Source: Lepidodermella squamata (Eukaryota; Animalia; Gastrotricha). Taken from it: a stretch of DNA of 64,000 bases. Below the pieces are notes generated by a model. It was not told the origin of the DNA and made no database searches. It saw nothing but the letters and a program-made list of their open reading frames with translations. Location of the stretch: the NCBI GenBank assembly GCA_047495785.1, contig JBLDXI010000004.1:2666001-2730000 (forward strand), written 5' to 3'. The translations under genes were made by a program, and so were the position numbers. Below, in pieces: positions 10,364 to 59,400 of this stretch (its first letter is position 1; each line of letters starts with the position of its first letter).

Positions 10364-13300
10364 TTACAAAAACTGCTCGCATAAGGCGTTTTGCAATGCG
10401 TAATCACAAACTTCAGTTTTGAAGTAATATCCAGGTGGGTTGACATTATAGAAAATAAGACCGCAGCCTTCGGGTAACGACGACCACTGCTCTCCGAAAT
10501 TGAAATCGGAGCCATCGTCCCATTTGAGAACTCCTAACTGCTGAGTGAAACCGATCCAGAAGTATTTTCTCGGATACTGGGTTATCACTTGCAAGGCCGT
10601 GGTCACCTCGGCTGCTGACCTAATCGTGGCTATCGTAGCATTGTTTTGGACACATTTCGACGCGGCGGTAGTTTTGCCGCCCGAAATTTCCACCGCCAAG
10701 TACTTCTTAACCACAGCCTTGCAAGTGTTCTCGTCCACATAGGTGACACTGGCCGGAATTCGAACCTGAATTGCCGCATTGCAGCCTGTCGACTCGGTTA
10801 CACAGTGAACCGTCCCGTCAGTTTTGTCGACGCAGCGGAAATATGACTAGAAAAGAACGTAACATTAAATTCGAAAACTATTATTGAACAGAAATGATAC
10901 ACACTAAAAACTAGTTTTTTGAAATGTATCCTCAGTTTTTTGATTGGAAGAATTCTGACACTTTGGTGGAATTTTTTCAAAATGTTGTTCTAAAAGCTTC
11001 AAAAAAGGCCGAAAACACAAATAAAAGGGCCCTAGCGAAAAAACAGCTCAATTCCGGGCCCATATTAGTTCCGTCCGGTCCCCAAGCGCCTTTAGCATCT
11101 TTGCGCGCGGTTTTAAATTTGTTAAAAATAATTCAACTTATGCGCAAAAGCCAAGTCCTGATTTTTAACAAATTTAAAACCGCGCGCAAAGATGCTATAG
11201 GGTTACTTTCAAATATCGCGGCGGTTTTTATACCAAAACATAATTCAGACAATTCTCTATCGATTGAATATGGGGTTCTCGCTCGAAAAAATTAAAATAA
11301 AAAAGTTTTACGTGCACCTAAAATTTTGCGCGCGAGTTGAGAGCGCGCGCACTCGCTTCTCAAAAGTTAGGATGTGCGGTAACCGTTTTTTCGTTCATTT
11401 TTCACGCGAGAAATCCATATATATTCTATAGAGAATTTTCTGAACTTTCTTTTTCTTTTAAAAACCGCCTAAATAATCAAAACTTGCCCTTTGACTTAAC
11501 CGCACGCGGCCTTGAAATTTCTAAAAATTTTGACTTATGCGCGTTTTGCGCGTTTTGCGCTGGTCCACTTTTACCCTCCGACTGGACGGAACTAATATGG
11601 GCCCGGAATTGAGCGAAAAAACATCTCCACGATGGTTAATGTTATGTTCATGTGTAGCTCAATTATATGATGTTCATGCAAGAACATAAACCGCACATCG
11701 AAAGCAGAAATAATATGAAATCATGTTACAGCCACACATCGGAAAAAAGTCACAAATCGCTAATTATTTTTCATTATGGATTACTAATTTCGACACGCTG
11801 TTCACGAATATCAAGTTTGTTTTTCACCCAGGATCACCTGAGAGGTCGTTTCGGCAAGGTGAAATTAAAAAACTACCTGGGTGAAGCCGCGCAATCTTCT
11901 GCGTAAAGCCGTTTTTTGTGAATTATGAAGAACAAAAAAAACTTGTTCTATTTTCTACGATTCACAAGAAAACAGTTTTAATGAGAGTTTATCGTAATCA
12001 AATTTCATGAGCGGAAGTGGCGCAGTGCAGAGAGAGGCGGGCTGTAAGCTAAGGGCTGGTTGGTTCGACAAGGTTCGAATCCCGATGCCGTCTGCACTTT
12101 TTTGGTTGATGATAATGTGATGTTTATATTATAAAATTTGATAAAAACATTACATTTTTTTATGTTTTTGCTGCACACGTTCACGCGCGTTTCTGTCAAG
12201 TTCTTGCACGATCTCACACGGTCTTGCAGGTTCCTGCCAGAGACTTTGATTTGATTTGATTTGATTGTGATTTGATTTGATTTAGGCCATTTTTTGATGA
12301 TTTGATTTACTGATGATTTGATTTAGAAAATTTCATGATGATTTGATTTGATTAAAATTTAGCCCACTTGATTTACTGCTGATTTATAAAAATCAGAACT
12401 CTCGGAGTTCCCCCAGTAACTAAACATGAGAACTCACATTTGCCTTGAAAACAACTGTTTTCCAAAGCCTGGAGCTATTCATGCCCTTGCATACTCATTC
12501 TGCCAAAACCAAGCATGAAATTTGAAAGAATCCCCAGAAATTTACCTTAATACTCATGTTTCCCTATGCGAAAGATTTGATTTGATTTGATTTAAACGGG
12601 CCTGGTGATTTGATTTGATTGATTTACTATCGATTTTTGGGGAATTTGATTTGAAATGATTGATTTACAAAGACCTGTGATTTACTGAATAAATCAAATC
12701 AAATCAAATCAAAGTCACTGGTTCCTGCGTAGACGTCAACGTGGACGTGTGTGGCTGGTGTGATGAACCAACATGGAAATGTCAAATTCACGCAGGACTT
12801 TTGTATGAGGGCACGAATGCCACAGGGCCTTAAAGCAGTTGTTGCCTGGTTTGCCTAATGGAAAATCTGTCACTGTTTGAGATACAGACTCACAGGAGCA
12901 CTATAATCTTGAAAGCAAACTCACAAGAGGCTTGATACACGATGCGAGATTGGGATACACCGTTGTTCCAGTAACCTGTAGATGAAAAATAGTCAAGAAT
13001 CACAAAACGAACTAACCGAGACGGACTCCAAAGACTACCACTTTGAAAACTGGAAAATCACTCACCCAGTTATTGGGGCAGGAGTACGGGTCCGGAACAC
13101 AGGTCTTGATGACGTTGTTCGACGTACAGCGCCTGAATGCCAAAGTCTGCAATGAAAAAATCATATCAGCATGCTAAATATTCAACGTTTCCAAGTGTCC
13201 TCACCTCAAATGCAGCTTTCTTTTTCTCGCATTCGTTGAGGTTGAATTTCAAGCTCAACGTGGGCTTTTGGTCGTCGAACCAGAACGTCTGGTTATTATT

Positions 13301-13767
13301 AGAAAATAAAAAAAAATAAGGATTTTGATTCAATCTTTGATTCATTGAATCGGAATGATGCTAACATTCATATCACCCGGGTTGTTGCATCCGATGTACC
13401 CGGGAACGCAAAACGGGGTAAGAGCCGCGTATTTGTAGCACATTCGGGCATTCTAAATCAGAATAAAATTATAAAAAAATGTAGCCGATCAATTAACAGA
13501 CCCCAGTGTTGCAGACGCCGACTGTTGAGAAAATCCCACCCCACTGTCGATAAAGGGACACTTGAAGAACTTGAATTAGAAATTGAATTCGAGGAAAACC
13601 TGAAATTCGCGGAGTGGATCACAGCCATTGACAGCTTGTACGCAACTTGTGAATAGGCTGCTCCGCTTCGAGAAGCACCGTACCCAGTTCAACGGCTTAC
13701 TGCCCCAAGCCAGTTCGCTCGAAGCCAGCATCAGCACCAACAGCACAGCAAAGTAATAAACAGTCAT
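10364..13767 (-). CDS. Secreted protein B: signal peptide, four 4-Cys repeats, C-type-lectin-like domain
   Basis: ATG 13767 MTVYYFAVLLVLMLASSELAWG; six small exons down to ~12925, then a phase-0 join (inferred) to the last exon SYFRCVDKTDGTVHC...FWIGF...LKWDDGS...ALCE. Confidence 0.75.
11046..11614. mobile_element. Mutator-like MITE
   Basis: ~34 bp TIR GCTCAATTCCGGGCCCATATTAGTTCCGTCC; 9-bp TSD GAAAAAACA on both sides. Confidence 0.88.
12011..12103 (+). pseudogene. Degenerate tRNA-like sequence (pseudo-tRNA or SINE head)
   Basis: A box TGGCGCAGTG, B box GGTTCGAATCC, 6/7 acceptor stem and a downstream T-run; anticodon and T stems do not pair. Confidence 0.6.
12238..12720. mobile_element. hAT-like MITE with (GATTT)n subterminal repeats
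   Basis: TIR CAG(A/T)GACTTTGATTTGATTTG; perfect 8-bp TSD GTTCCTGC. Confidence 0.92.
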
Positions 13768-16122
13768 TTGTGGAGTCACTAAAAAGTCGAGCGCTGATTG
13801 GTTAATTGAGCGTTGCTAAGACTCCGGAATGAAAAATTTCTGCCGTGCTATCCACAAATAAATAATTTATTTGTTACGTTAGAAATGGTTTGGGTTGGGT
13901 TAGGGTTGAAGACTGGGTCTTAAACAGTGGCGTAACCCGTAACCAGCTGGTTGTTTTGGTTGGTCAAACAACTACATACCAAGATGAAAACTCAAAAACC
14001 CCTCCCGCGGCCTAAAAAAGCCTCGCTAAAATTGCTTAAATGGGGAGGATATGTTTGCAAATTGCCAAAAATTGTATCGCTTCGCTCGAAGTCTCGATAT
14101 CGTTGATTGAAAATCGGCACTAGTCGGCCTTGAATTATCCTGGGAGAAATTCAAATTACATCCTCAGATCTATTTGGAACTGATTGGAATAAATTGGTAC
14201 GGAATTCAATGACGTTTAGTACTGAATTCAATCATTTAATTCGGTAATGATTCACTATTTCCCGTGAATGTAGTTAAATTTAGAGGATCAACAACATTCT
14301 CAAAACGAAATAGGGAAAGTGCTGTCGCTGTAAACAGCGTTAAATGTTGTTTTTCAAGTTGATTTGGCACGCGAACAGCTTACGGCCTTTTGTGAACAGC
14401 TAATACATTGAACCAGTTGAACCCTTTGAACTCGTCGCCGTCAACATCTGTGACCCTGGCGCGTGGCAACTCGAGCTCAAGCTCGACCTCGATTTTTCGA
14501 CATTTTTTGATAAAATAAAGACGTACATATCTGGAGCTTGTGTGAGAACATGACTCACTAATCTTTTTATTCTCTAGCTTGGAATATTAACTGCTATTAG
14601 CATAGCATAGCATAGCGATATCTTTATTACACCATTATTATTAGTCATTAAATATTAACAAAGATTTCAGTGCAAAGAAAATGAGTAGGCAAAATGATAA
14701 AATAAAAATCACTCGACGTACCCAGCGAGCTGTTGATTAAATTAACGTCGAGAGTGCCGAGCGTGGCGAGCGAAGTGAGCCTCAATTGTCACTTTTTCGC
14801 GAAATCATCGGTTGAAAATGCGATGATAATGCTTCGAATTAGAAAATCTTGGATCTTGGAAGAAGCTCACTAAAACGCAACTCAATGCTATAAGATTTAG
14901 TTCGCTTTTCTATAAAATTGTCATATTTCCTACACCCAATTTTGCCTGTTCACTTGAAGCGTTGAATGTTGATTTTATTACATCTGATGAGCGTGTGCTG
15001 CCTCCATTCATGAGCATCGTACACAGCTAGCACAGATAGCTTTATCACTTTGAGTAATCAGATTTCAGGCCCAGTGATGAATTTTACAGATTTCAGAACG
15101 GATTTCCGGGTCAATATATCAGAAAATGGGCCGAAATTTCTCATTTCTGTTTCCATTGTTTGTCTTCGCCTTGTTGATCTCACGGCATATCAAACGCTTA
15201 TCGACTGTCGCACAATCGCACGCTTATCCTTAACGTGATCAACAATCGAAAATCGATAACACAAAAAAGGCGCTGCTTCTTTTTTGCTTCTAGTGTCGCG
15301 TGTTTCAGTTCTCGATAACAAAACAAAATATGGCCTGTTATCGGCTTGTCAACACCCACCATGAAGCTCGTGAGTTTACGCTAATGAATGAATGATTGTT
15401 CGGGCACGTGCCGATACGAAAAATAAAAATAAGTCTTTTTTCACACACAAATACATTTTTAGTTTATCAAACATTAAATATTTATGAAACCGAACTTTAC
15501 TAGAGTTCCGCTGACCACGGAACAAAGCTGGTCTGACACTGGTCGTTTCTCACAGATGTATCCCATAGAACATAGAACAGGATAATTTCAGTTTCTTTGG
15601 CAAGGCAGGGTTGCTATAGATGATAGTTTATTAATTGATTGAGAAATCGTTGTGGTTTTCATTTTTATTTTTTTTCTTGATTGTGGGCTCTTCACCTGTC
15701 CCCTTCACTCTTTTTCTCAGGTAGCAAAGTTGATTAGGACGCATGCCCGCTCGACGCCCTTACAGTATTTTTCCCGAAGTTTTAGTTTACCTTGTATACA
15801 TATTTGGTTACCTAAAATTTCATTTTTAGCAAAAGATTGATCGGTTTGAGGTTATGGTTAGGTGACAGGCTTATGTTTAAGGTTAGCTTTAGGGTTAGGT
15901 TTTTAATAAGTCTCGGCTTTTGGGTAACTTCGAATTGTAGGGTTCAGTACTTTGTCAGTAGCTGTTTTTAACCAGAACCGAGTGATTATATGTATTCATT
16001 TGCGTTATGCAGCTTAAATTTTGTGACAGATTGTGTATGAATGCAATTTGAAAATTAATAATACTATCAAATTTATTAAATAAATAATTGTCACATTAAT
16101 TCTAGATTTTTCAAGATAAAAC

Positions 16123-19100
16123 ATGCTTTTTTCGAGACATTTCTTCGTAGAGATGGCTTGCATCATCGCCATTATCGCTCAAGGCGTAATGAATGTAAGC
16201 TTACAATTTAGACAATTTTTGCATTTGTTTATTTATTTGTTAATTCATTGGCTCCACAGGATGAAAAGGCCGATGCCGAGCAGGTGCGACAAATCCTATA
16301 CAAGCTCTATTCTCAGAAGCGACTGGATGGTGGCCGAGAAATAGTGAGATATTTCACGCATATTCTTAGAAATAACCGAATAGAATAAATATAAATAACC
16401 GAAAAGCCCATCGGAATTTGATGATAAGCGGTACCACAAAAGGGAATTTTCCGCCCAGTCAAATTTCTCGTAATTTTCAAGATTTATTCTTAAACTAAGT
16501 TCCGTTAGCATTGTGAAACGTGTCAGAAAAAAGACAGAGGCTAGGTGTGGTGACAACTGATCAAGCTTCTATTTAACATGCGACAACTCGGCACGACTAT
16601 TAGGCAAACTCAATTCGACACTAAAAATTTCAAGGACCGAAAACGACAATTCGGCAAAACGATAACTCGACATGATGAAAATCACCAATATGGGTAAACG
16701 ACGACTCGGCAGGAATACATTTCTGCCACTTCTGCCACTGCCGAGTAGTATTTTTGCCGAGTTGTCGTTTTCGATCGAATAAAAATTATTGTCGAATTGA
16801 CACTTGCTGAATTGTCGCTGCCGAATTTCCCAGTTGTTGTTGATCAATTGTCATACATAGGACTGAATCTTTGGGGCCATTTCACTCTAAACCCTTTCAC
16901 GACCGTAAAGAGGATTTACTTGAATAGAAGAGGAATTCGGACTTCGCCTGACCCGTTATTCAAAGAAGGGGTGCTCTTATCAAGGTCTCGTACATTTAAA
17001 AAGCTAAAAACGGCACGATTTGAGGCGCTAATTCTTTTGGATCGTAAACAGCCCTACCTATATGAAAGAGCTTCAGGGAGAACAGGGAGAGGACTTTTAT
17101 TCAAATGCTTTTCACCCAAAATTATTGTCTGGTTTCGCCACTGTCGATAAAATTAAGGATTGATGAATCAGAATTCAACCGATAGCTTGCTAGCCGAAAC
17201 TCGTATTCGAATTCAGTTTTCAAATCCTGTATCGCCTGGGCGCCTAGTCCTCAAAATTGCAGTGCGCTGGAAATTCGATATCCCCGAATACCTATTAGTA
17301 AATTGGTAATCTAGGAATCATCGAATAGCAAAATCAAAGCTACAGTAATCGGCCGACCAATCATTTATAGCCTAGGCCCATTCTTGCTCCGACGACGGAG
17401 TCCCTTAGCTTTCAAATACTATCGTTAAGATGCGCCGTACTCACTCTTCGCTCAAAGATGAAACAGATTTCGAACAAATTATCGAAAAATCATATTTTTT
17501 GGCCGAAAGTGTATTTCGGGTGGGAGTAGTCATTTATTGGTTTAATAATTTGCCTGAAAATATTTAAAATGCCTTTTCACTTGTGTTCCGTTGCCAATCA
17601 CAGTTGCCTATTGAGAAATTCGAGGTGCCGAAGACGAAGGCCGGGCTGAGGCCGAGCGTGGCGCAATCTATGTACGACAAATTCATGGCTAGGCACCACA
17701 GCAGCAAAGCAGATGCAACCGACGACAGCGAAAGCGTGCCCAATCTCAGATCAGCATCGTCTAGAGCCTGGCAGCTGCCGTTGCCTGTTTATATTAGCGA
17801 GGATTATGATCGGAGTGAGTTGACACGATGTTGCTGTAACAGGATTCTAACTAAACACCTGTAACTTGATAGCTCCCGAATTCTATGCCAAGTTCATCGT
17901 TGCTCTCGACCTTTACAAGCAACACACGTGCTTCGATTACAACCTAACAAACGATTGGGTTGTTCTATTGGTTAACCAAGACGTGTAAGTTAGCTATGAT
18001 GCACAATCATTTGGTGATTTTGCTCTTTTCCAGCGTAACATTCACGCCAGGCCACTTCGCGGGAAATACCATGACGAATGCATACATAGATGTACCTATT
18101 ACAGTGAGTACCGTCGGAATAATTTGTCATTAGAAATCAGCCGTTGCTCCCAAGCTTTAAAAATTGTAACAAGATGTAACAATTTGGGTGGCCAAATTGA
18201 AGAGTGGCACCCTGTAGAGACCAAATTGAAGTCTATGATCTACACGACTTACACGCCTAAACGGTTTTCATGAAATTATAATAAATTTGATATTCATTAG
18301 AATTGAAATTAAAACATTGCATACGTAATTTATTAATAATTATTTGCCTGTAATTGGAAAAAATGAATTTGGAATCGATTTTTCAGCTAAGAACCGACAT
18401 TGCAGGAAATACGTTTCATTTTATTGCTAGAAAGCTAAGCCCTTATTTATTCCGAAACCATTTTCTCAATTTCATGTGCATACAGGGGGAGGGCCAGTGA
18501 CTATCGAAGCAAGTTATTCATTTATTTTGACAGGCTATTCATCGCATTTTGGCCTTTGACATCGGCGTGGTAAGTCAAGCTCTATTCTTTTATTCGCTCA
18601 TAAATGTGGACGTTACAGGAAGAGGAGGCCACTCGCCCTGATCGGGATACGTACTTGACGGCGACGGGATAGTAAATAATGTTCGCCCAAACAACTTTTT
18701 CATATTTATTTGTATGATAGCGATTGGAAGAAAGTTATTCCAGCCGAGCAGTTCGAAGGTTACGGTGTACCCTTCGACTACGCGTCCGCAACAATGGTAC
18801 ATCCACTTGTAAACGATGGCGAAGTGAAACCGAAGGACTGGCGCTACGTTGGCGCCATGAATGCCCCGCTGCCGTCTTTCAACAACTTTAAAGTTATCAA
18901 CATGTTTTACGACTGCCTAGGTGAGATAAATCAAGCTACATTTTATGCGTCTCGTTTCAAATCACGATTCTTCCTTCTGGCAGCTCTCTGCAGTGGGCCG
19001 GCTCCGAACTGTACCCACGGCGGCTATCGGGATCCCAAGAATTGCGCCATCTGCAAATGCCCGCCCGGTTTCGGCGGTCCCTTCTGCGACGATTTGCCTG

Positions 19101-21091
19101 TATTTCCTGGTGAAACTTGCGGCGGTGTGATCTATCTGGAACCAGGAGTCTCGCAAGCCATCGAATCGCCAAATTATCCTAACAGTTACCCAATCGGCAG
19201 TACGTGTTCCTGGCGAGTCATCAGCAGCCAGGTGACATCTTGTTGCCTTCTTGAACTTGAACCTCAAATTTTCAACGCAATTACAGCCTGGCATTGTGTT
19301 TGGTTTCGATGGCAAACCTGATCTAACAGTTGGAGTAGGTAAGCACCAATTGAAGTTTTCGAATTTGGGTTATTAATTGGAAAGATTCGCATGCCGGTTG
19401 GCTAGTTTGACTACACTACGGAAAAAAGTAGCTGATAATTAGCTAAAGGGTGGCCAAAAATGCCGCAGAATGTGAATTTGATGCGCATCAACTTATTTGG
19501 AGTATTTAGTAGTATTTTTTGCCAATGAGAGTCCTCAGTAAAAATGATGCGTATCAAATTCACATTCTGCGGCATTTTTGGCCACCCTGTTGAGACCAAA
19601 TTGAAGTCTATGATCTACATGACTTGCCCGCCTAACAATGGTTTTCATGTAGATCGTTGACTCCAGTTTTGGTCTGTAGCTAATTATCAGCAAATAAACC
19701 ATTTTTTTCCTAGTGTACCTATGTGGGAAGGCATGAATGCAAAAACAGCTGGCCAATCGGAGTTCGTAATCCTTACTTGAACCCAAAAACACTTGAAGAA
19801 TCTGCCGATTTGTTTTTAAATATTGATATTATTCTGATTCTGCTATAACGCAGTGGATGATGGATGGTCAAGTAGCACCGAAAGCTGTTTCGATTACGTC
19901 GAATTTCGCAACCCCGTCGATGGTACTCAGCCTTACTTCCGAATTTGCTCCTATGGCGTTAGCTCGGGGAAAATCTACGAGACGGAGGGGAAAACAGCTG
20001 TTGTGCACTTCAAAGCCAACTCAGAAAACCCTGGCAAAGGCTTCAAACTGGTAGCGCGATCGAGTTTACCAACAGACAATCTGTTGGAGTTGAGGCTGAC
20101 CGCGACTGGTTACGACTACGAAGGCCAGGTTTCGAAGACAAAATCTGGTCGCCCTTGCTTACCGTGGCCTGCCCCAACAACCTGGGTTGAGAAATTCCAG
20201 TATCCTCGCGGATTGGTGGAGCTGTCGCAGAATTTCTGCCGCAACCCACTGTCGCGCGCCACTGGTCCTTATTGCTTCATAAGCGTGGGCAATGCCACGG
20301 TGGAGGAGTCGTGCGACATCCCTATAACACCGTCTCCTGGTAATTTCTATTCAAGGCTCAAAGCTCATTTCTAAACATGCACGAATTTACCGTATCAGTT
20401 AAGCCTCGTCCGGCATTTGGTCGATGCATGGCGAGTTCGACGAACGAATATCAAGGCTGCAAAGCTAATTGTCCCACTAGCGAATACTCGCTGAAAGGCA
20501 GTAAAACCTTCGCTTCTACAAGTTCATGCGAGAAAGGGGTTAGATTTATTGCACTTTGAAAATTCTAACAAAAATAAGTTGTTTTATTCACAGTCGGCTA
20601 TAAAATGTGAGAAGGTTGTGCGAGGAGTCACCACATACCGATGCATTGGAGGTGATATGAGTTGCGACAAAGCAGCTGGAGAGCGACAGGTTTTAGCGTT
20701 TCAGGCAGTTTTCTCCTGTTTTCAAATTATTTTTCCATTTCCTCAAGTTGCAAGTATACAATGGCTATCGCTATTTCTCAAGAAATTTTCTGTCATGTCA
20801 ACACTCCGACGGCATGGTTTGTTGCTGTTTGATTCTCAAACTACTTTGTGATTCAGTAATTTCCCGCAAATTAGACTTACGTCCGCTGCTTTAACAATCG
20901 AACGAAAGAATTCGCGGAATGCCGCCGAAAGGCTCTTGGCTGCCACCAGGATGAAGTGAGTTTAAATCGTACCTTTCCAACCATTTTTTACCGTCATTTT
21001 TCTAATACCACAGTTCGCCCTTCCCTCGTCAAAACAAGATCCCATCAGATCGCCACAACAGTGCTATAGTGGTCTTCCTATTACAGCCTAA
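16123..21091 (+). CDS. Secreted astacin-like pseudo-peptidase, EGF, CUB, kringle and three 4-Cys repeats (copy 1)
   Basis: Astacin landmarks RAWQLPLPVYI, YKQHTCF, TRPDRD, YGVPFDYAS, INMFYDC; EGF CTHGGYRDPKNCAICKCPPGFGG; CUB IESPNYP...CFDYVEFR; kringle YEGQVSKTKSGRPCLPW...NFCRNP; open frame through short GT-AG introns to TAA 21089-21091. Confidence 0.85.
16550..16854. repeat. Foldback/MITE built from CGACAACTCGGCA-like units (also at 38835-39139)
   Basis: Ends TGACAACTGATCAA / TTGATCAATTGTCA, with internal direct and inverted units. Confidence 0.6.
19447..19588. mobile_element. Palindromic MITE in an intron of astacin-like copy 1
   Basis: ~45 bp TIR AGGGTGGCCAAAAATGCCGCAGAATGTGAATTTGAT; absent from the matching intron of copy 2. 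Confidence 0.8.
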
Positions 21092-35389: not shown

Positions 35390-36052
35390 CTTGATGACGT
35401 TGTTCGACGTACAGCGCCTGAATGCCAAAGTCTGCAATGAAAAAATCATATCAGCATGCTAAATATTCAACGTTTCCAAGTGTCCTCACCTCAAATGCAG
35501 CTTTCTTTTTCTCGCATTCGTTGAGGTTGAATTTCAAGCTCAACGTGGGCTTTTGGTCGTCGAACCAGAACGTCTGGTTATTATTAGAAAATAAAAAAAA
35601 ATAAGGATTTTGATTCAATCTTTGATTCATTGAATCGGAATGATGCTAACATTCATATCACCCGGGTTGTTGCATCCGATGTACCCGGGAACGCAAAACG
35701 GGGTAAGAGCCGCGTATTTGTAGCACATTCGGGCATTCTAAATCAGAATAAAATTATAAAAAAATGTAGCCGATCAATTAACAGACCCCAGTGTTGCAGA
35801 CGCCGACTGTTGAGAAAATCCCACCCCACTGTCGATAAAGGGACACTTGAAGAACTTGAATTAGAAATTGAATTCGAGGAAAACCTGAAATTCGCGGAGT
35901 GGATCACAGCCATTGACAGCTTGTACGCAACTTGTGAATAGGCTGCTCCGCTTCGAGAAGCACCGTACCCAGTTCAACGGCTTACTGCCCCAAGCCAGTT
36001 CGCTCGAAGCCAGCATCAGCACCAACAGCACAGCAAAGTAATAAACAGTCAT
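35390..36052 (-). pseudogene. 3'-truncated copy of secreted protein B (exons 1-4 and part of exon 5)
   Basis: Identical to 13105-13767 but breaks at 35390 inside exon 5; no downstream exons seen. Confidence 0.85.
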
Positions 36053-39000
36053 TTGTGGAGTCACTAAAAAGTCGAGCGCTGATTGGTTAATTGAGCGTTG
36101 CTAAGACTCCGGAATGAAAAATTTCTGCCGTGCTATCCACAAATAAATAATTTATTTGTTACGTTAGAAATGGTTTGGGTTGGGTTAGGGTTGAAGACTG
36201 GGTCTTAAACAGTGGCGTAACCCGTAACCAGCTGGTTGTTTTGGTTGGTCAAACAACTACATACCAAGATGAAAACTCAAAAACCCCTCCCGCGGCCTAA
36301 AAAAGCCTCGCTAAAATTGCTTAAATGGGGAGGATATGTTTGCAAATTGCCAAAAATTGTATCGCTTCGCTCGAAGTCTCGATATCGTTGATTGAAAATC
36401 GGCACTAGTCGGCCTTGAATTATCCTGGGAGAAATTCAAATTACATCCTCAGATCTATTTGGAACTGATTGGAATAAATTGGTACGGAATTCAATGACGT
36501 TTAGTACTGAATTCAATCATTTAATTCGGTAATGATTCACTATTTCCCGTGAATGTAGTTAAATTTAGAGGATCAACAACATTCTCAAAACGAAATAGGG
36601 AAAGTGCTGTCGCTGTAAACAGCGTTAAATGTTGTTTTTCAAGTTGATTTGGCACGCGAACAGCTTACGGCCTTTTGTGAACAGCTAATACATTGAACCA
36701 GTTGAACCCTTTGAACTCGTCGCCGTCAACATCTGTGACCCTGGCGCGTGGCAACTCGAGCTCAAGCTCGACCTCGATTTTTCGACATTTTTTGATAAAA
36801 TAAAGACGTACATATCTGGAGCTTGTGTGAGAACATGACTCACTAATCTTTTTATTCTCTAGCTTGGAATATTAACTGCTATCAGCATAGCATAGCATAG
36901 CGATATCTTTATTACACCATTATTATTAGTCATTAAATATTAACAAAGATTTCAGTGCAAAGAAAATGAGTAGGCAAAATGATAAAATAAAAATCACTCG
37001 ACGTACCCAGCGAGCTGTTGAATAAATTAACGTCGAGAGTGCCGAGCGTGGCGAGCGAAGTGAGCCTCAATTGTCACTTTTTCGCGAAATCATCGGTTGA
37101 AAATGCGATGATAATGCTTCGAATTAGAAAATCTTGGATCTTGGAAGAAGCTCACTAAAACGCAACTCAATGCTATAAGATTTAGTTCGCTTTTCTATAA
37201 AATTGTCATATTTCCTACACCCAATTTTGCCTGTTCACTTGAAGCGTTGAATGTTGATTTTATTACATCTGATGAGCGTGTGCTGCCTCCATTCATGAGC
37301 ATCGTACACAGCTAGCACAGATAGCTTTATCACTTTGAGTAATCAGATTTCAGGCCCAGTGATGAATTTTACAGATTTCAGAACGGATTTCCGGGTCAAT
37401 ATATCAGAAAATGGGCCGAAATTTCTCATTTCTGTTTCCATTGTTTGTCTTCGCCTTGTTGATCTCACGGCATATCAAACGCTTATCGACTGTCGCACAA
37501 TCGCACGCTTATCCTTAACGTGATCAACAATCGAAAATCGATAACACAAAAAAGGCGCTGCTTCTTTTTTGCTTCTAGTGTCGCGTGTTTCAGTTCTCGA
37601 TAACAAAACAAAATATGGCCTGTTATCGGCTTGTCAACACCCACCATGAAGCTCGTGAGTTTACGCTAATGAATGAATGATTGTTCGGGCACGTGCCGAT
37701 ACGAAAAATAAAAATAAGTCTTTTTTCACACACAAATACATTTTTAGTTTATCAAACATTAAATATTTATGAAACCGAACTTTACTAGAGTTCCGCTGAC
37801 CACGGAACAAAGCTGGTCTGACACTGGTCGTTTCTCACAGATGTATCCCATAGAACATAGAACAGGATAATTTCAGTTTCTTTGGCAAGGCAGGGTTGCT
37901 ATAGATGATAGTTTATTAATTGATTGAGAAATCGTTGTGGTTTTCATTTTTATTTTTTTTCTTGATTGTGGGCTCTTCACCTGTCCCCTTCACTCTTTTT
38001 CTCAGGTAGCAAAGTTGATTAGGACGCATGCCCGCTCGACGCCCTTACAGTATTTTTCCCGAAGTTTTAGTTTACCTTGTATACATATTTGGTTACCTAA
38101 AATTTCATTTTTAGCAAAAGATTGATCGGTTTGAGGTTATGGTTAGGTGACAGGCTTATGTTTAAGGTTAGCTTTAGGGTTAGGTTTTTAATAAGTCTCG
38201 GCTTTTGGGTAACTTCGAATTGTAGGGTTCAGTACTTTGTCAGTAGCTGTTTTTAACCAGAACCGAGTGATTATATGTATTCATTTGCGTTATGCAGCTT
38301 AAATTTTGTGACAGATTGTGTATGAATGCAATTTGAAAATTAATAATACTATCAAATTTATTAAATAAATAATTGTCACATTAATTCTAGATTTTTCAAG
38401 ATAAAACATGCTTTTTTCGAGACATTTCTTCGTAGAGATGGCTTGCATCATCGCCATTATCGCTCAAGGCGTAATGAATGTAAGCTTACAATTTAGACAA
38501 TTTTTGCATTTGTTTATTTATTTGTTAATTCATTGGCTCCACAGGATGAAAAGGCCGATGCCGAGCAGGTGCGACAAATCCTATACAAGCTCTATTCTCA
38601 GAAGCGACTGGATGGTGGCCGAGAAATAGTGAGATATTTCACGCATATTCTTAGAAATAACCGAATAGAATAAATATAAATAACCGAAAAGCCCATCGGA
38701 ATTTGATGATAAGCGGTACCACAAAAGGGAATTTTCCGCCCAGTCAAATTTCTCGTAATTTTCAAGATTTATTCTTAAACTAAGTTCCGTTAGCATTGTG
38801 AAACGTGTCAGAAAAAAGACAGAGGCTAGGTGTGGTGACAACTGATCAAGCTTCTATTTAACATGCGACAACTCGGCACGACTATTAGGCAAACTCAATT
38901 CGACACTAAAAATTTCAAGGACCGAAAACGACAATTCGGCAAAACGATAACTCGACATGATGAAAATCACCAATATGGGTAAACGACGACTCGGCAGGAA

Positions 39001-40556
39001 TACATTTCTGCCACTTCTGCCACTGCCGAGTAGTATTTTTGCCGAGTTGTCGTTTTCGATCGAATAAAAATTATTGTCGAATTGACACTTGCTGAATTGT
39101 CGCTGCCGAATTTCCCAGTTGTCGTTGCTCAATTGTCATACAGCGGACTCAATCTTCGGGGCCATTTCACTCTAAACCCTTTCACGACCGTAAAGAGGAT
39201 TTAGGAATTCGGACTTCGCCTGACCCGTTATTCAAAGAAGGGGTGCTCTTATCAAGGTCTCGTACATTTAAAAAGCTAAAAACGGCACGATTTGAGGCGC
39301 TAATTCTTTTGGATCGTAAACAGCCCTACCTATATGAAAGAGCTTCAGGGAGAACAGGGAGAGGACTTTTATTCAAATGCTTTTCACCCAAAATTATTGT
39401 CTGGTTTCGCCACTGTCGATAAAATTAAGGATTGATGAATCAGAATTCAACCGATAGCTTGCTAGCCGAAACTCGTATTCGAATTCAGTTTTCAAATCCT
39501 GTATCGGCCTGGGCGCCTAGTCCTCAAAATTGCAGTGCGCTGGAAATTCGATATTCCCGAATACCTAAAAGTAAATTGGTAATCTATGAATCATCGAAAA
39601 ATCATCAAAATCAAAGCGACAGTAATCGGCCGACCAATCATTTATAGCCTAGGCCCATTCTTGCTCCGACGATGGAGTCCCTTAGCTTTCAAATACTATC
39701 GTTAAGATGAGCCGTACTCACTCTTCGCTGAAAGATGAAACAGATTTCGCACAAATTATCGAAAATCATATTTTTGGCCGTAAGTGTATGTCGAGTCATT
39801 TTTCGGTTTATTCATTTTCCCGAAAATATTTGAAATGCCCTTTCACTTGTGTTTCCGTTGCAAATCACAGTTGCCTATTGAGAAATTCGAGGTGCCGAAG
39901 ACAAAAGCCGGGCTGAGTCCGAGCGAGGCGCAATCTATGTACGACACATTCATGGCCAAGTATCACAGAAGCAAACCAGCGGCAACCGACGAAGGCGAAA
40001 GCGTGCCCAATCTCAACGCAGCATCGTCTAGAGCCTGGCGGCTGCCCTTGGCTATTAATTTCAAGGAGGATCGTGTTCAATGTGAGTTGATCCGCTGTTG
40101 CTGCGTTAAAAGATTCTAACTGTAAATTGACAGCCGCTGAATTTAAACCTAAGTTCATCGCTGCTCTCGACCTTTACAAGCAACACACGTGCTTCGATTA
40201 CAACCTAACAAACGAAAGGATTGATCTAGAGGTTAATGAAGACGTGTAAGTCGGCTATGATGCACAATCATTTAGTGATTTTGCTCTTTTCCAGCTACGC
40301 TTACACGCCAGGCCCCGCCGCAGGAAATTCTCAAGCATATGCATACATAGATGTACCGATTACAGTGAGTACCATCGACATTCTTTGTCATTAGAAATCA
40401 GCCGTTGCTCCCAAGCTTTAAAAATTGTAACAAGAGAGGTGAGCAAGGTGATTTATGAATTTATGAAAAATTATACCTCCTCTATTTTCAACTGATTAAA
40501 GGAAAGTTAAAACGTGTATTGCTGACGTTGATCAGGATAATTTCATTTCACGTGTT

Positions 40557-41008
40557 ATATATGTCGTATCGTATAAGGCAATCCCTCCAATTGCCGATAG
40601 AGATATCTCAATGAGCAATCCGATTTTACTTTTTGCCTGTTGTTTTCATCAGCCTTCAGGTTATTGAATTATAATCTATCACATATTAAAGTGCCCGAAT
40701 AGCTCTATCGATTGGTCAGCTAATATATTAATAAAGAGTTTAAATGGACCGAGAAGGCCAGAGGACAGTTACAGTGAAAATACGCTAGCTTTTTAAAAAC
40801 TCATAAAACACGCAGTTACGGAACAAGTTATTAGGGAAAATGGGCTCTGCTAGATAGGCGAAGGGCTATTCTGCTATCTTGCTTGGTTTCCAAATTAAAA
40901 AACCTGATTAAAATAACTGAAAATGACGTTGGGAACAATTCGGATTGCTCTTTGAGATATCTCAATCGGCTATTGGAAGAAATTGCCTTATACGATACGA
41001 CATATATA
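40557..41008. mobile_element. MITE with ~70 bp imperfect TIRs
   Basis: TATATATGTCGTATCGTATAAGGCAAT ... ATTGCCTTATACGATACGACATATATA. Confidence 0.8.
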
Positions 41009-41506
41009 GGATACGGGTTGATTTGCTCGTCCGTTGATTCCCTCCTTTGTTGGCTTAATTAAGTTCCGTTAGGAAAACCTTGTTTTGTCAGCAACGACAC
41101 CTTCTAGAAGCTAAGTTATTAGCTAATTTAATTCAGAGTTAATGGGCGAATGAAGCTTATTTTACTAAAATGAAAGGCTAATATACATATTTTGATAGTC
41201 GCTTCTTGGCATCAGCGCTTGCGGCCAACATTTTAACAAAACAGAAGTGCAATTTTGCATTAAACTTGAAAGAAATTTCAATATTCCACATATTTCAAAT
41301 GCTACGGCGAGAAAAATGGTGAATTCGGAAGCTCAGATATCCGAGGTCGTTGGAAGTATTAGGAAGTTGTGGTCTTCAGTCGCAAGGCTTTTAAAGTACA
41401 ATTCAACTGAGCATTTCAAAATCGAAAATGCATATATTACCAGAGCAAGACTGACGCTGAAAGGCAAAGTCTTACCGAAACGTAACCTGAGATATGATTT
41501 AATGCT

Positions 41507-41989
41507 CGTTAGCGTTTCGGTATAACTCTCCATTTGACGGTAACTCCATCTCGTCATTGTTCTCTAGTTGCGGTAAATAGTTTACCGTAAACAGCACTAC
41601 ACTGCGACACTAAGTCGTAAAATACTCGCGTGCGGTAAAATTAATTTCTCTGCGGTAATTTCAGCTCATATTATCTTGTAGGAACAGTAGGAATTACAAG
41701 CATATTATGGGGGAATAGAAATGGAGTTGGAACTGCGCTCAGGTTATATGATGGTGTGCGCGCGCAGCTTAGAATACAGCGTGTTACGCAACCGCTGTAG
41801 CGCATTGCTGCGAGCCGCAAGCCACAAGCTTGGGCCGCAAGTGCTTCTGCGGTAAAAATAACACCGCGTGCGGTAAAAATTAACTTACACGGCGCCGTTA
41901 GTTTTACTGCACGAGCATTAAGTAACCTGGTTTGCGTACTGCGGTAAAATACTTACCGTCAAATGGAGACTTATACCGAAACGCTAACG
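41507..41989. mobile_element. MITE with ~35 bp TIRs and GCGGTAAAA subterminal repeats
   Basis: CGTTAGCGTTTCGGTATAA.TCTCCATTTGACGGTAA and its reverse complement; possible 4-bp TSD TGCT. Confidence 0.8.
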
Positions 41990-44607
41990 TGCTGAATAAA
42001 TCTGAGAATGGCGATTTTCATTAGCCCAGTGGCTATCGGAACAATTTATTCATTATTTTGATAGGCAATTCATCGCATTTTGGCCTTTGCCATCGGCGTG
42101 GTAAGTCAAGCTCCATTCCTTTATTCGCTCATAAATTTGGACATTACAGGAAGAGGAGTTCACTCGCCCTGATCGGGACACGTACTTGACCGTGACAGCA
42201 GAATAGTAAATATTGTTTGCTTATTTGTTTGCTTACTCATTTTTATTTGTATTATAGCAATTGGATAAAGAAAATTATTCCAGCCGAGAAGTTCGAAGGT
42301 TATGGTGTACCTTTCGACTACGCGTCCGCAACAATGATACATCCGCTCGTAAACGGAGGCGACGTTGAACCGAAGGACTGGCGCTATGTTGGTGCCATGA
42401 ATCCCCCGCTGCCATCTTTCAACAACTTCAAAATTATTAACATGTTTTACGACTGCCTAGGTGAGATTAATCGAGCTTTTACGTGTCACGTTTCACAGCA
42501 CAATCTTTCCAGCTAACTGCAGTGGGCCTGCTCCGAACTGCACCCATGGCGGCTACCGGGATCCCAAGAATTGCGCCATCTGCAAATGCCCGCCCGGTTT
42601 CGGCGGCCCCTTCTGCGACGATTTGCCTGTATTTCCTGGTGAAACTTGCGGCGGTGTGATCTACCTGGAGCCTGGAGTCTCGCAATTCATCGAATCTCCT
42701 AATTATCCTAACAGTTACCCGATCGGCAGTACGTGTTCATGGCGAGTCATCAGCAGCCAGGTGACACCTTGTTGCCTACTTGAACCTTAAATTTTCAACC
42801 GAATTACAGCCTGGCATAGTGTTTGGTTTTGACGGCAAACCCGATCTCACCGTTGGAGTGGGTAAGCACCGATAAAACTAATACTTATTGTTGAAAGTGA
42901 AGTTCTTTAATTCGGGTCATTGATTGGAAAGATTCGCATGCTGATGGGCTAACAGCTGGCCAATCGGAGTGTATAATCTTTTCATAAACCCAAAAACACT
43001 AAAATAATTTACCGTTTTTTTAAAAGATTAAAATTATTCTGATTCTGCTATAACGCAGTAAATGATGGTTACACAAGAAGCACCGAAAGCTGTTTCGATT
43101 ACGTCGAATTTCGCAACCCCGTCGATGGTACTCAGCCTTACTTGGTACAATGCTACGGTGGAGGAGTCATGCGATATCCCTATAACACCGTCTCCTGGTA
43201 ATGATTTCTTATTCAAGGCTCTCATCTTTAAATCTGCACGAATGTACCATATCAGTTCAACCTCCTCCGGCTAAGGCATTTGGTCGATGCGTGGCGAGTT
43301 CGACGAACGAATATCAGGGCTGCAAAGCTAAGTGCTCCACTAGCGAATACTCGCTGAAAGGCAGCAAAACCTACACTCCTACGCGTTCATGCGAAATCGG
43401 GGTTAGAATTATTTACATTTGAAAATTCTAAAAAAATTGATTGCTGTCACAGTCGGCTAAAAAATGCGAGAAGGTTGTGCGAGGAGTTACCACCTACCGA
43501 TGCATTGGGAATGATATGAGTTGCGACAAAGCAGCTGGAGAGCGACAGGTTTAAACAGTTTTCTCCTGTTTTCGAAATTATTTTTCCATTTCCTCAAGTT
43601 GCAAGAATACAATGGCTATCGTTATTTCTCAAGAAATTTTCTGTCATGTCAACACTCCGACGGCATGGTTTGTTTCTATTTGATTCTCCGACATTGTGTT
43701 TCACTAATTTTCCGCAAATTAGACTTACGTCCGCTGCTTCAACATTCGAACGAAAGCATTCGCGGAATGCCGTAGAAAGGCTCTTGGCTGCCACCAGGAT
43801 GAAGTGAGTTTAAATCGTACTTCTCAAATCATTTTTACCGTCATTTTTCTAATACCCCAGTTCGCCCTTCCCTCAACAAACCAAGATCCCATCAGATCAC
43901 CAGGCCAGTGCTATGGTGGTCTTACAGTCTAATAGCCACATAAAGCCACACTTCTGGACTTGATTCGATGGCAACAGTTATCTTTATTGTAAAATGTTCA
44001 GCCATCACGTGATACCACGTTGATATTTAATATTGCCGGCCTTCCATGTTTAAAGCAGGCTTTTAGTTTTTCTTTTGAAAATGTTGATCGCTTAATAAAG
44101 TTATCATCGTTTCTGGCTTCCAAAGCTGCATGTGGAAACAAGCTAAACAGCTAGATTGCGTCAGGATAACAACAGTTACCATATTAGGTAGCGGGTTGAC
44201 GTTCCGCGTTGTTATCAGTTCCGCTTAGATGAACTACGCCGCGGTTTACTTGCATGTGAACAAATCCCTTGGCGATGGACGCTGAAAATGAATTTTTTTT
44301 TATTTGAAATAAGTATGCGCAAAACGTTTTGCCTCGCATACTAATGTGTTTACCCAATAAGCTTTTAGAATGGGTCAATTTTCAGACTTATTATCGTGCG
44401 ATAAGAAATCACATACAGTCAAAAGCATACAGACAATGTTATTTGGGACTCACGTGATGTTATATAGATCAAACTAATACCTTTTTCCAGACTTTGTTTA
44501 ACGAAAAGGGCAGAGCCAAAATAATTTCTCAGGACATCGGTGCAATATATTCAGCCTGAAAATGGAACTCTTTCATTCCACGTATCCAATTAAATATTTC
44601 CACAATC

Positions 44608-55171: not shown

Positions 55172-55584
55172 AGTAAGCGTAAAATGCCCAGCCGCCACTT
55201 CTCTTGGCCGCAAATTTCCATGAGCTCCCGCAAAGGTGGGTAGCATCCATGCCTACTGCATGTTGGCCCTTGTGATGCGCTGCCATAGTCCAACCAGCGC
55301 CGTGTGTCCTAGCGCAAATTATCACCGAATGTGGCAGATGTCAGATCGGTTCCTGAAATAGATGAGGAACAATGAAAAAATGTTGTACATACAAGTTTCG
55401 CCTCTAAAACTACAAAATGTAAGCAAATTACTACTTTCATTTAGGAAAATTATGGAATAAATTCACTGAAATTTGAAATATTTGGAATTAAAGATCTACC
55501 ATCTATTTTTTTTAATTGAGTACTTTTGTTAAATATCTGCGTATCGATTTTCGAATTCTAAGATTTCTTAAATAATAATTTACC

Positions 55585-56451
55585 ATGGCCCAACTCAATC
55601 TGGAGACGGCGGAACAATTTGCGACGCTAAACCAGCTGATCGATGACGTGGCTGATCTCGAACTACGAGATAAAATTCGTAGGTCGGTGGCGATCATCCA
55701 AAACGGAGTGCTGGTGGGCATTTTCGCCAAACAAGCTCGAGACGACAAGGAGATGTTGGAGCACTTGGCCGAAAAAATTGCCAACGAAGATTTACTCGTC
55801 ATTTCTGGACTGCCAGAGAAAAACTGGCAAGAGGAGGTGAAAAAGCTGTTGCCGATAAACCTCCCTAAGTGGACAATCCAGGAACGCAAGGCTGATGGGT
55901 CGGTTGTCATCGAGCTGATCGAGGACGCAAGGCAAGCCAAACAGCGAATCTTTGCGGAGGCTAGAAAGTGGAGGTCGCCACTTAGGGCCTCGAACCCAGC
56001 AACTGGCCACATCCGCGAGGTAGGCGAGCTCCTCGAAAAGGAGAAGAAGGTCCTGGAGGAACAAGGTTTCCAAGGACTCGAAATACGAGGGGCGAACCTC
56101 GTACAAGGCAGGGCCGTTCTGACGAGATATTTCTCTCGTGGGAACAGGCTAGTAACCAAGCATGCGCCTATGGAGGACTTCAAGCCGGAAGAAAAGCCAG
56201 TTGGACCACAGTGCTTTGGCTGTTTTGAGTACGGACACATGCGATATCAATGCCCGAACCAAAACAACGGAAATGGCTACTACCGAAACAACTTCAACGG
56301 TTTCGACAACAACTACCAGCAACGTCGTCCCGGGGGAAACAACTTCCGTGACGAATACCACGGCAACCGTAAAAATTATAACGGCAACAACTACAACGGC
56401 AACAACTACAACGGCAACAACTATGGCTATGGCCGCCGGCCCAACTGGTAG
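55585..56451 (+). CDS. LINE ORF1, gag-like, with a zinc knuckle and an N/G/Y-rich tail
   Basis: CFGCFEYGHMRYQC (CX2CX4HX4C); NYNGN repeats; intact 288 aa. Confidence 0.85.
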   Translation: MAQLNLETAEQFATLNQLIDDVADLELRDKIRRSVAIIQNGVLVGIFAKQARDDKEMLEHLAEKIANEDLLVISGLPEKNWQEEVKKLLPINLPKWTIQERKADGSVVIELIEDARQAKQRIFAEARKWRSPLRASNPATGHIREVGELLEKEKKVLEEQGFQGLEIRGANLVQGRAVLTRYFSRGNRLVTKHAPMEDFKPEEKPVGPQCFGCFEYGHMRYQCPNQNNGNGYYRNNFNGFDNNYQQRRPGGNNFRDEYHGNRKNYNGNNYNGNNYNGNNYGYGRRPNW

Positions 56452-59400
56452 GCCGGGCACCACCCACTCCCAACGCTCAACAGATTCGAACTATTAGCTG
56501 ACTATGATGACTTTCGATCAGTGACCTGTGATGAAGATGATGAGGACAATGGAGAGGGCGAAGGCAGCATGAAAAATGACAAGAAACTACCTATAAAACG
56601 GCTAAAATGTAAGAGTAAAACAACCTTGCGCCAATCATCAAAAATTAAGGACGATAATGTTTTCAAAATTTGTACTATCAATACTACTACGCTAAATAGG
56701 AAAGAAGAGGAAACAAATTCTGAACTTCGTCTATATGACGCAGTGGCTTTGCAAGAGCACTGCAAAAAAGGCCAAGGCCGTATAAATCTTAGGCATGGCA
56801 CGATTTATTATAGTGGCGTAAATGATGGTAAGGCACAATCAGGGGCCGCACTATATGTTGGACGATGCAAATATATACATGTCATCGAGGTCAAATATAT
56901 CAATGAACGTATTATATCGGCTAGGCTTAAAGTAAATCGCGATATGTTTAACATTATTTCCGTCTACGCACCAGCAAATAATTGCACCAAAACATTAGAC
57001 GCCTTTCTTCAAGTACTGCAACAAGAATATGCGCGTTTGAACTCAAAAACAGGCACTACAATTGTAATGGGAGATTTGAACGGCCGGATTATGAGTGCAC
57101 AAAAATCAAAAACTGTAGGCCCTTATGGTGATAACATTAGAAATGATAAAGGAGATTTATGGATTGAATTTGCAAACAGCAACAATCTGTGTTTTATTAA
57201 TACGTTTTTCCCCAACATTGGGTACACATGGCAAAGGGGCAACGGAAAAACCCTTCGTAGATCCTTCTTAGACTACATCTTGGTCGATAAAAGCGAAAAA
57301 GATAAATTTGATGTTTGCGACGTTCAGGAAGAACCCATACTCGAATCAGATCATAGGCTAGTTCGTGGTGTTATTAAGTGCCCAAACTTTCAACGGAAAA
57401 AGGTTGACATTAAAAAATCAATTAAACATCATTTGCTTAGGAATGAGGAAAACAGTTCCAAGTTTAATGAAATTTTAGCTAGCAACATCGCAAATGAAAA
57501 CGAAAACCCTGTCTCAATAGAAGAGAAGTGGGTGAACACTAAATCTAACCTACTGGATGCTGCCAGATCCTCCTGCGGTGAACGAAAAGTAGGCAAAATT
57601 AGCGAAAAACCGCTCTGGTGGACACCATTAGCCAACAAAATCATTCAAAAAGGTAAAGAAAATTTTAAAAACTACACCAAGGGCCACATAGACCGAGAGA
57701 ATTATACAATAGCTAGAAATGAGAAAAATCAGGCCCTTGAACGCTTGAAAATTATTAAGGATCAAACTGAATTTTCTGAATTGGACAAATTACTTGAAAA
57801 TCCGACTGATTATGATAATATCAAAAAATTCTGGCTGGAAATAAAAAAATTGAGGGGAGAAAATAGAGAGAAAAGCGAACCCAATCCTCTTGAAAAAGAA
57901 GACGGCTCACTTACCAGCGGAATTGACGAAATATTAGAAGTTATGAAAAAGTATTTCATTGATCTTCTACAAGGACTTGAAAAGGAACCCAATAACCCCG
58001 ACGATGAAATTCTATTAGATAAAAATCCAAATTTAACAGAAATTACTCTCACCGAAATTAAAAATGCCATCGACCACATGAAAAACGGTAAAGCCCCGGG
58101 TATAGATGAAGTAAGACCCGAAATGATCAAAGCTCTGAGCGAGGCCAATATTGAATGGCTCAGGGAAATTTTGAATCGAGCTTGGATAGATAAGAGGGTC
58201 CCAGAAGAATGGTCAACGGCTATAATTACCCCAATTTATAAAAATAAAGGTGAGAAATCAAAATGCTAAAATTACAGAGGCATCAGCCTCTTATAAGTGT
58301 TGTAGGAAAACTCTATGCCATTATTCTCGAACGAAAATTGAGAGCATTAATTGGGTCAAAAATTTCTAAACTGCAATTTGGTTTTCAACCCCTCAAGGGC
58401 ACCAGAGACTGCATTTACGTTCTCCGACAAATTATAGAGAAAATTATATTCTTTAAGAAGGAACTCCACCTAGTCTTCATCGATCTCGAAAAAGCCTATG
58501 ATCTGGTGGACAGGGAAAAAGTATGGGCCGCCCTCCAAAATATGGGTGTAGAACCCAGCTTAATTGAAGCTATTCAAAGTCTATATAAAGTAAATAAAGT
58601 TGCTGTTAGAGTCGATTCTGAGCTCTCAGATTTCTTCTATGTTACCAGGGGACTAAGACAGGGTTGCCCGTTGTCTCCTTTGCTATTCATAGCGACCTTC
58701 AACAAAATTTGCGAAAAAATATCTGCTGAAAAATTAGGCTTTCCTATTAGCGAGACCGCAAACAGCGAGACCGCTATGAGCGAGACTGATTTCCTAAATT
58801 TACTAGCGTTTGCTGACGACGGAACACTTTTAGGCATGAACCACGACGAAATTTCACGACTACTTCACATTTTCGATTTGGCTTGCACCGAATTGGGTCT
58901 GAAAATTAACGCGGCAAAAACTCAATATATGATTATTTCTAGAGACGAGTCAGCCACTCAAAATTACGAATTGGAATTGAACGGGAAAAAACTTGAAAAA
59001 GTGACCAAATTTAAATATTTAGGGAGCATTATTACCAGTGACGGCAAAATCGATGAGGAACTAAACTACAGAATTTCTAAGGCAGGCAGTGTTTTCGGCG
59101 CCATGAATAAATTCATGTGCAACAAAAGTCAGGTTTCCATAGCTACAAAACTTAAGGTACTGACATGTGTTATAATACCTGCCATCATTTACGCCTGCGA
59201 ATCGTGGAACATATCGATAGCCCAAGAAAATAGACTAAACACTATAGAATATCGATGGCTTCGATCTATAGTAGGTGTCCACCTAATGGACTATATTCCA
59301 AATATAGACATTCGACTTGCGTTATGCGGAGGTCTCATTGAAGTGAGCCGCATTGTTGAAAAACAAAGGCTAAGGTATCTAGGGCACATAATTAGGTCAC

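Follow-up and report, generated by a model that had tools for sequence, protein, structure and literature searches.

A transcribed gene of the gastrotrich Lepidodermella squamata encodes an astacin-like pseudo-peptidase under partial constraint

The stretch of DNA analysed here (the window) comprises 64,000 nucleotides of the Lepidodermella squamata contig JBLDXI010000004.1 (positions 2,666,001 to 2,730,000, forward strand), is eukaryotic in character (short GT..AG introns, G+C ca. 41%) and carries two copies of a gene whose predicted product combines a putative degenerate astacin (M12A) domain with EGF, CUB, kringle and LCCL-like modules. Copy 1 (16123-20894, plus strand) is transcribed and correctly spliced and, judged from its residues, its product is incapable of zinc endopeptidase activity by the known mechanism; copy 2, ca. 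23.5 kb downstream, was broken recently by a 347-bp frameshifting deletion. Both are members of a lineage-specific family in which copies are gained and lost. We consider copy 1 a real, partly constrained pseudo-peptidase and put at roughly 65% the probability that its multi-domain product is secreted, does no cutting and, most likely, works by binding.

Across exons 5 and 6 of copy 1 the region of the astacin zinc motif reads AIHRILAFDIGV|EEEATRPDRD, split by a 49-bp intron, and its counterpart in copy 2 reads AIHRILAFAIGV|EEEFTRPDRD (42065-42100 and 42150-42205); the Met-turns are SATMVHP (18785-18805) and SATMIHP (in the exon 42258-42460), respectively. All of these strings, which a first-pass annotation of the same DNA had pointed out, are present where it placed them, and across the 64 kb, translated in all six frames, the pattern R.DRD is found at two places only, one in each copy. 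The zinc motif HExxHxxGxxH with its three histidines is found in neither copy. In both, the general-base glutamate is replaced by arginine and the tyrosine zinc ligand of the Met-turn by proline, the second histidine is replaced by alanine (phenylalanine in a gapless alignment) and the third by glutamate; the methionine of the turn, the family-specific glutamate following the third histidine position and RxDRD (E-E-A-T-RPDRD in copy 1) are retained. The annotation had considered all zinc ligands to be lost together with the catalytic glutamate, and this holds for the glutamate, the second and third histidines and the tyrosine but not for the first histidine, which is probably retained. Its quotation of the motif began at the arginine and so omitted the histidine directly before it (AIH-R), which, by alignment to a dead relative (L004, see below) and to active relatives (HE[VI]GHALG..HEH.RPDRD), most likely occupies the first zinc-ligand position. 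Placing it there requires a one-residue insertion before the glycine, and the gapless alignment shifts it by one residue; on the aligned residues, at most one of the three zinc histidines is left, and the catalytic glutamate, the second and third histidines and the tyrosine ligand are gone in either alignment. The cysteine pair of the GC..VG strand region, found in active relatives, is missing as well, exon 4 of copy 1 being devoid of cysteine. An alternative exon supplying an intact HExxH, a counter-explanation raised by the annotation, was looked for and is ruled out: in the six-frame translation of the window no HExxH..G..H string occurs in or near either copy. Two resemblances to the missing astacin strands in intron 4 of copy 1 (VSTVGIICH and LSLEISRCSQ) are ruled out too, since the transcript skips both.

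The gene model was derived from splice-site prediction and conservation between the two copies, and then from two public runs (X1 and X2) aligned over 15200-20700. It has 14 exons and ca. 668 codons, and exons 0-12 of copy 1 are in frame over 1860 nt, with every splice site intact and zero premature stops. Run X1 behaves as RNA because its depth is zero over the flanks and long introns of copy 1 (the label itself being a guess), and X2 is genomic DNA. An X1 contig of 2307 nt aligns to copy 1 with zero mismatches, covers exons only and contains the joints 16343>17604, 17814>17873, 17984>18034, 18103>18534, 18569>18619, 18671>18721, 18920>18984, 19231>19287, 19338>19854, 20339>20399 and 20538>20594; the joint 16194>16260, likewise GT..AG, comes from another X1 contig. 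In all, 12 introns of copy 1 are supported by X1, every one of them GT..AG, including the splice between the two motif exons (18569>18619, zero mismatches) that the annotation had proposed. The stop at 20372, a candidate for the end of the protein, was rejected since the joint 20339>20399 puts it inside an intron, and the protein therefore extends beyond the kringle. The annotation's architecture, which had the kringle as its last module, is thus incomplete: the transcript confirms two further coding exons (11 and 12, the first of them LCCL-like), and another one (13) starts where the loose end of the contig, which departs at 20689, matches the DNA from 20748 onward. The stop of copy 1 is predicted at 20892-20894, in exon 13, and the N-terminus is hydrophobic and resembles a signal peptide. 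The exons of copy 1 are as follows.

16123-16194, plus strand: exon 0, ATG and signal-peptide-like hydrophobic N-terminus (X1 joint; 100% identical in copy 2)
16260-16343, plus strand: exon 1, pro-region (X1 joints 16194>16260 and 16343>17604)
17604-17814, plus strand: exon 2, pro-region, then the beginning of the astacin-like domain (X1 piece, 0 mismatches)
17873-17984, plus strand: exon 3, N-terminal subdomain with a conserved cysteine in HTCFDY (X1 piece; astacin profile)
18034-18103, plus strand: exon 4, shortened region without cysteine (X1 joints 17984>18034 and 18103>18534)
18534-18569, plus strand: exon 5, dead active-site helix, with AIHRILAFDIGV replacing ..HExxHxxGx (X1 joints on either side)
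18619-18671, plus strand: exon 6, EEEATRPDRDTYLTATG, including EEEATRPDRD (best match of the local astacin profile; X1 joints)
18721-18920, plus strand: exon 7, Met-turn and C-terminal subdomain, ending in ..INMFYDC (X1 piece; ESM Atlas)
18984-19231, plus strand: exon 8, EGF-like module (6 cysteines) and N-terminal part of CUB (Pfam, PDB, alignment to the active relative L001)
19287-19338, plus strand: exon 9, middle of CUB (X1 joints; protein identical in copy 2)
19854-20339, plus strand: exon 10, C-terminal part of CUB and kringle (Pfam Kringle; X1 piece)
20399-20538, plus strand: exon 11, four-cysteine module like the N-terminal half of LCCL (X1 piece; weak Pfam and PDB matches)
20594-20689, plus strand: exon 12, cysteine-rich tail (X1 piece)
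20748-20894, plus strand: exon 13, predicted to be the final coding exon (match to the loose X1 contig end; stop and exon end predicted)

The introns of copy 1 hold some repeats, i.e., a ca. 65-bp repeat shared by introns 4 and 9 (18208-18272 and 19583-19649, 90% identical) and, in intron 9, a 142-bp inverted repeat (19447-19588) with the look of a miniature inverted-repeat transposable element. One X1 contig also contains an opposite-strand joint (18331/18420).

From N- to C-terminus, copy 1 encodes a signal peptide, a pro-region, the dead astacin domain, EGF, CUB, kringle and LCCL-like cysteine modules, those at the two ends being predictions from sequence likeness. The kringle in exon 10 (PF00051) is the clearest of these (55.1 bits vs. 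a cut-off of 34.3, E 9.9e-15), and has four cysteines vs. six in the kringles of the active relative L001, the first and last positions being occupied by other residues. The N-terminal part of the CUB domain in exon 8 (PF00431) reaches 21.5 bits vs. a cut-off of 21.4 and matches the CUB domains of cubilin, PCPE and MASP in PDB, and the rest of CUB aligns to that of L001; upstream of CUB lies an EGF-like module containing six cysteines. Exon 11 matches Pfam LCCL (PF03815) weakly (15 bits vs. a cut-off of 22.6, E 0.028, profile positions 22-47 only), and its single PDB match, also weak, is the LCCL domain of cochlin (E 0.13). As for the astacin domain, exon-by-exon searches gave no astacin match in Pfam (E<=1) or PDB (E<=10). 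The features of the ESM Atlas place exon 7 in clusters of PF01400 Astacin (0.93, 26 of 30 matches), and exon 3 alone went unrecognised by them. A local profile, built from 28 astacin domains taken from an exhaustive HMMER search, matches exons 2, 3, 6 and 7 in the correct order in both copies with 0-11 bits each: exon 2 at profile positions 6-28 (weak, colinear), exon 3 at 32-52 (in both copies) and exon 6 at 108-119 (the best match). By tblastn, EATRPDRD pairs with EHTRPDRD of L001, and the C-terminal SFNxxKxINxxYxC aligns as well. The cysteines of HTCFDY (exon 3) and FYDC (end of exon 7) are present in both copies at the positions of the astacin subdomain-bridging pair, and we infer that they pair with each other. 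Taken as a whole, these likenesses are consistent with an astacin ancestry of the N-terminal domain.

Selection was measured between copy 1 and copy 2 as the ratio of non-synonymous to synonymous differences per site (pN/pS, one-sided p). The introns of the two copies differ by K=0.22, close to the synonymous divergence (dS) of ca. 0.25. By region the values are as follows.

EGF and N-terminal part of CUB, exons 8-9: pN/pS 0.06, p 3e-9
Dead motif to the end of the astacin domain, exons 5-7: pN/pS 0.28, p 4e-4
N-terminal subdomain, exons 3-4: pN/pS 0.68, not significant
Pro-region, exon 2: pN/pS 0.90, not significant
Cysteine-rich tail, exons 11-13: pN/pS 0.53, p 0.06

Purifying selection is thus significant on the dead motif and the C-terminal subdomain (exons 5-7). 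The proposal of a maintained pseudo-peptidase is borne out in part for copy 1, which has an intact frame of 14 exons, a spliced transcript and constrained exons 5-7 but exons 3-4 and a pro-region that are indistinguishable from neutral, and it fails for copy 2, in which a frameshifting deletion costs half of the CUB domain and nearly the whole kringle.

Copy 2 and the regions that bear on its history are listed here.

38408-43742, plus strand: copy 2, equivalents of all 14 exons (exon mapping, conserved GT/AG; 84-100% nucleotide identity)
42065-42460, plus strand: dead-motif exons and Met-turn exon of copy 2 (AIHRILAFAIGV / EEEFTRPDRD / SATMIHP)
43059-43197, plus strand: exon 10 remnant of copy 2, 139 nt (alignment to copy 1, frame check)
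40365-42064, plus strand: intron 4 of copy 2, 1700 bp vs. 430 bp in copy 1 (ca. 1.3 kb extra)
13105-16850, no strand assigned: block ca. 100% identical to 35390-39135, exons 0-1 and upstream region (copy-copy alignment)

The 347-bp deletion in exon 10 of copy 2 takes out the C-terminal half of CUB along with almost the entire kringle. The resulting frameshift leads, in exon 11, to a premature stop at 43272; the frame would survive solely if the 139-nt remnant were skipped. Outside the deletion, the exons of the two copies differ by four indels (+3, +3, +6 and -3 bp), all multiples of three, and all splice sites of copy 2 are conserved. The annotation's view that both copies keep the reading frame is therefore right for the astacin, EGF and tail exons but not for copy 2 overall. 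The 3.7-kb block (13105-16850 and 35390-39135), which holds exons 0-1 and the presumed promoter, has an abrupt left edge, and on its right side near-complete identity decays to 84% inside the gene; this pattern points to gene conversion or to a recent secondary event or re-duplication. The word depth of X2 is ca. 99 in this block vs. ca. 40 over 18328-18695, i.e., roughly double. The most diverged exon between the copies is exon 4 (73% nucleotide identity), the adjacent intron 3 being 94% identical. Over the end of exon 3 and exon 4 (17950-18103 and 40220-40364), synonymous and non-synonymous changes are both raised (pN/pS ca. 0.7), and the patch looks more like a piece copied from a third paralogue than like clear positive selection.

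Astacin-EGF-CUB proteins are more broadly known from the nematode NAS/HCH-1 type (M12A, PF01400). For the gene of the window, an exhaustive HMMER search of 1.84 billion representatives returned mostly multi-CUB proteins and no close orthologue, and the astacin-EGF-CUB-kringle architecture is absent among its best 150 matches; word-index protein searches with an exon 7-8 read-through and with exon 10, run with a length window that excludes full-length relatives, were blank. Two weaker matches of the exhaustive search (P0039 and P0047) led to the relatives on which the comparison turns. L001 (1-7720) and L002, both eukaryotic and both taken from metagenome assemblies in ENA, contain astacin-EGF-CUB genes in tandem. 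A gene has one to three kringles, and the motifs are intact (HE[VI]GHALG[LM][HW]HEH[TM]RPDRD and S[VI]MHY). The architecture is uncommon, as had been noted, but it also occurs in these genes with intact motifs. They have in common with the gene of the window the domain order from signal peptide to kringle, the places at which CUB is split into exons, RPDRD and ..IN..Y.C, and identity to L001 is 50-54% in the EGF-CUB exon and ca. 35% in the CUB-kringle exon. Unlike these active proteases, the window's gene has (H)RxxAxx(x)GxxE for HExxHxxGxxH and SATMVHP for SxMHY, lacks the GC..VG cysteine pair, and has a shorter domain and an extra intron that splits the motif. A metagenome scan with an EGF-CUB alignment returned one contig (L003), which was dropped, being GC-rich, vertebrate-like with long introns, and no close relative.

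A second dead gene was recovered in L004 (Logan SRR23086389), which belongs to a different organism (GC 57% vs. ca. 41%). It shares the astacin-EGF-CUB-kringle architecture with the window's gene, and its motif, AAYRVGYVLGYNDETVREDRD, follows the pattern YRxxYxxGxxDE, with a dead YRVGYVLGYNDE..REDRD and the Met-turn SIMQP. Common to both are the glutamate-to-arginine change at the general base and the tyrosine-to-proline change at the Met-turn. The contig, from which the N-terminal part of the gene is cut off, keeps RxDRD, the family-specific glutamate, the methionine and the C-terminal cysteine. L004 differs from the window's gene in that all three histidines are replaced and in that the C-terminal part of astacin, EGF and the N-terminal part of CUB share one exon, and identity is ca. 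36%. The two genes may descend from a common dead ancestor. In the tree computed for the exon 7-8 region, all four rows of the kringle family group into a single clade, with weak support (Shimodaira-Hasegawa-like approximate likelihood-ratio test, SH-aLRT, 68), and a dead pair of the window's gene and L004, when constrained together, is not rejected (approximately unbiased test, p-AU 0.57); the tree holds no firm signal for a single vs. a double loss of activity. Another ENA protein, P0104 (704 aa), is an astacin-CUB-MAM protein (PF01400, E 1e-48) in which RPDRD is present and the regular expression HExxHxxGxxHE finds no match, and it may be another astacin with a modified motif.

Based on these comparisons, we postulate that an active astacin-EGF-CUB-kringle protease, similar to those of L001 and L002, would have given rise to the degenerate astacin domain. 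Because at most one histidine ligand remains, the domain would neither hold a catalytic zinc nor activate water. The EGF, CUB, kringle and LCCL-like modules, possibly along with the remaining cleft of the dead domain, could bind extracellular partners, and the protein may serve as a cofactor, a decoy or a scaffold, by analogy with dead ADAMs and arthropod serine-protease homologues. Several points weigh against this reading. The astacin exons fall singly below every Pfam and PDB threshold, and that the fold is retained is something we infer; the measure of selection comes from a single paralogue pair with one member now broken, and exons 3-4 (0.68) and the pro-region (0.90) are indistinguishable from neutral. 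Moreover, a close orthologue is lacking, the row of the window's gene in the tree sits on a very long branch in a weakly supported position, the RNA label of X1 is a guess and its contigs carry no information on the level of expression.

The same comparisons also allow a wider view, which we put forward tentatively and would rather bet against: dead astacin-EGF-CUB-kringle proteins may be an old, cross-species clade, marked by the glutamate-to-arginine and tyrosine-to-proline changes, in which the fold turned into a ligand-binding module and which here expanded into a large, fast-turnover family of secreted recognition or decoy proteins. If true, such a clade would be the astacin counterpart of the dead ADAM receptors or the arthropod serine-protease homologues.

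The strongest rival to a binding protein with a partly maintained dead domain is a vestige, i.e., a domain that drifts as a spacer or lengthens the pro-region and may be cut off once the protein is secreted, with selection acting only on EGF, CUB, kringle and LCCL. The gradient from a pN/pS of 0.06 in EGF and CUB to 0.68 in exons 3-4 and 0.90 in exon 2 speaks for it, as do the loss of one cysteine pair, a domain ca. 20 residues shorter, and the alignment to L001, in which the astacin part pairs in two short motifs only and the other domains reach 35-54% identity; some ADAMs, moreover, discard their pseudopeptidase domain (PMC11266112). Constraint is seen, however, on exons 5-7 (pN/pS 0.28, p=4e-4), which encode the dead motif and RPDRD as well as the Met-turn and C-terminal subdomain; the cysteines of HTCFDY and FYDC, RxDRD, the family-specific glutamate and the methionine are kept in both copies, with RxDRD, the glutamate, the methionine and the C-terminal cysteine also kept in L004, and the exon indels preserve the frame. 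We regard a mere vestige as rather unlikely.

Less probable still, to the point of being a poor bet, is that copy 1, though transcribed, is decaying into a pseudogene with no function today, its signal of constraint being a remnant of the time before the duplication or soon after it. The break in copy 2 and the lack of a close orthologue among the 1.84 billion representatives would fit such decay; yet ca. 668 codons in 14 exons have kept all splice sites and acquired no premature stop at a dS of ca. 0.25, the transcript is present and correctly spliced, EGF and CUB stand at a pN/pS of 0.06, and L004, from another organism, has the same kind of dead motif. As for a hydrolase with an alternative metal site, e.g., one formed by the retained histidine and the glutamate triplet (EEE), the single histidine and three consecutive glutamates at the former zinc site speak for it; it is highly improbable given that the general base has become arginine, the second histidine alanine or (gapless) phenylalanine and the tyrosine ligand proline, that L004 has Y/Y/D at the three histidine positions, so that a shared alternative site is not conserved, and that we know of no metzincin using a retained histidine and a glutamate triplet.

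The preferred reading of copy 1 as a secreted non-cutting protein has parallels in other families. Clip-domain serine protease homologues of arthropods (masquerade type) are dead proteases too; they are secreted, frequently belong to expanded families and function in binding or as cofactors; the likeness to the window's gene is a functional analogy only, fold and catalytic class being unrelated. Pseudo-peptidases are well described for the ADAMs and the M14 carboxypeptidases. ADAM11/22/23, ADAM2/7 and unc-71 of C. elegans (M12B) have, like the window's gene, an extracellular metzincin domain in which the zinc ligands and the general base are substituted and the methionine of the Met-turn is kept, but they are adamalysins rather than astacins and carry other accessory domains. 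Dead ADAMs act via protein-protein binding, and the review of pseudo-metallopeptidases that covers them has no astacin (M12A) example (PMC11266112). Kringle and LCCL are among the accessory domains of astacins in a 2023 review, and the astacin survey therein was restricted to sequences with intact motifs (PMC9848320); because only such sequences were retained, dead astacins fall outside its catalogue. At this locus, a dead astacin with rare accessory domains, a kringle and LCCL-like modules, has a gene model verified by its transcript, and it can be compared with active relatives that share its architecture and with a dead one from another organism. Should the dead domain bind ligands, the family would exemplify the natural reuse of a metzincin cleft for recognition.

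Elsewhere in the window, 55512-59417 holds the open reading frames of a retroelement of the long interspersed nuclear element (LINE) type, with a zinc knuckle, an Exo_endo_phos endonuclease and an RVT_1 reverse transcriptase (E 6e-31), and the remaining large open reading frames of the window are either LINE or without a family match.

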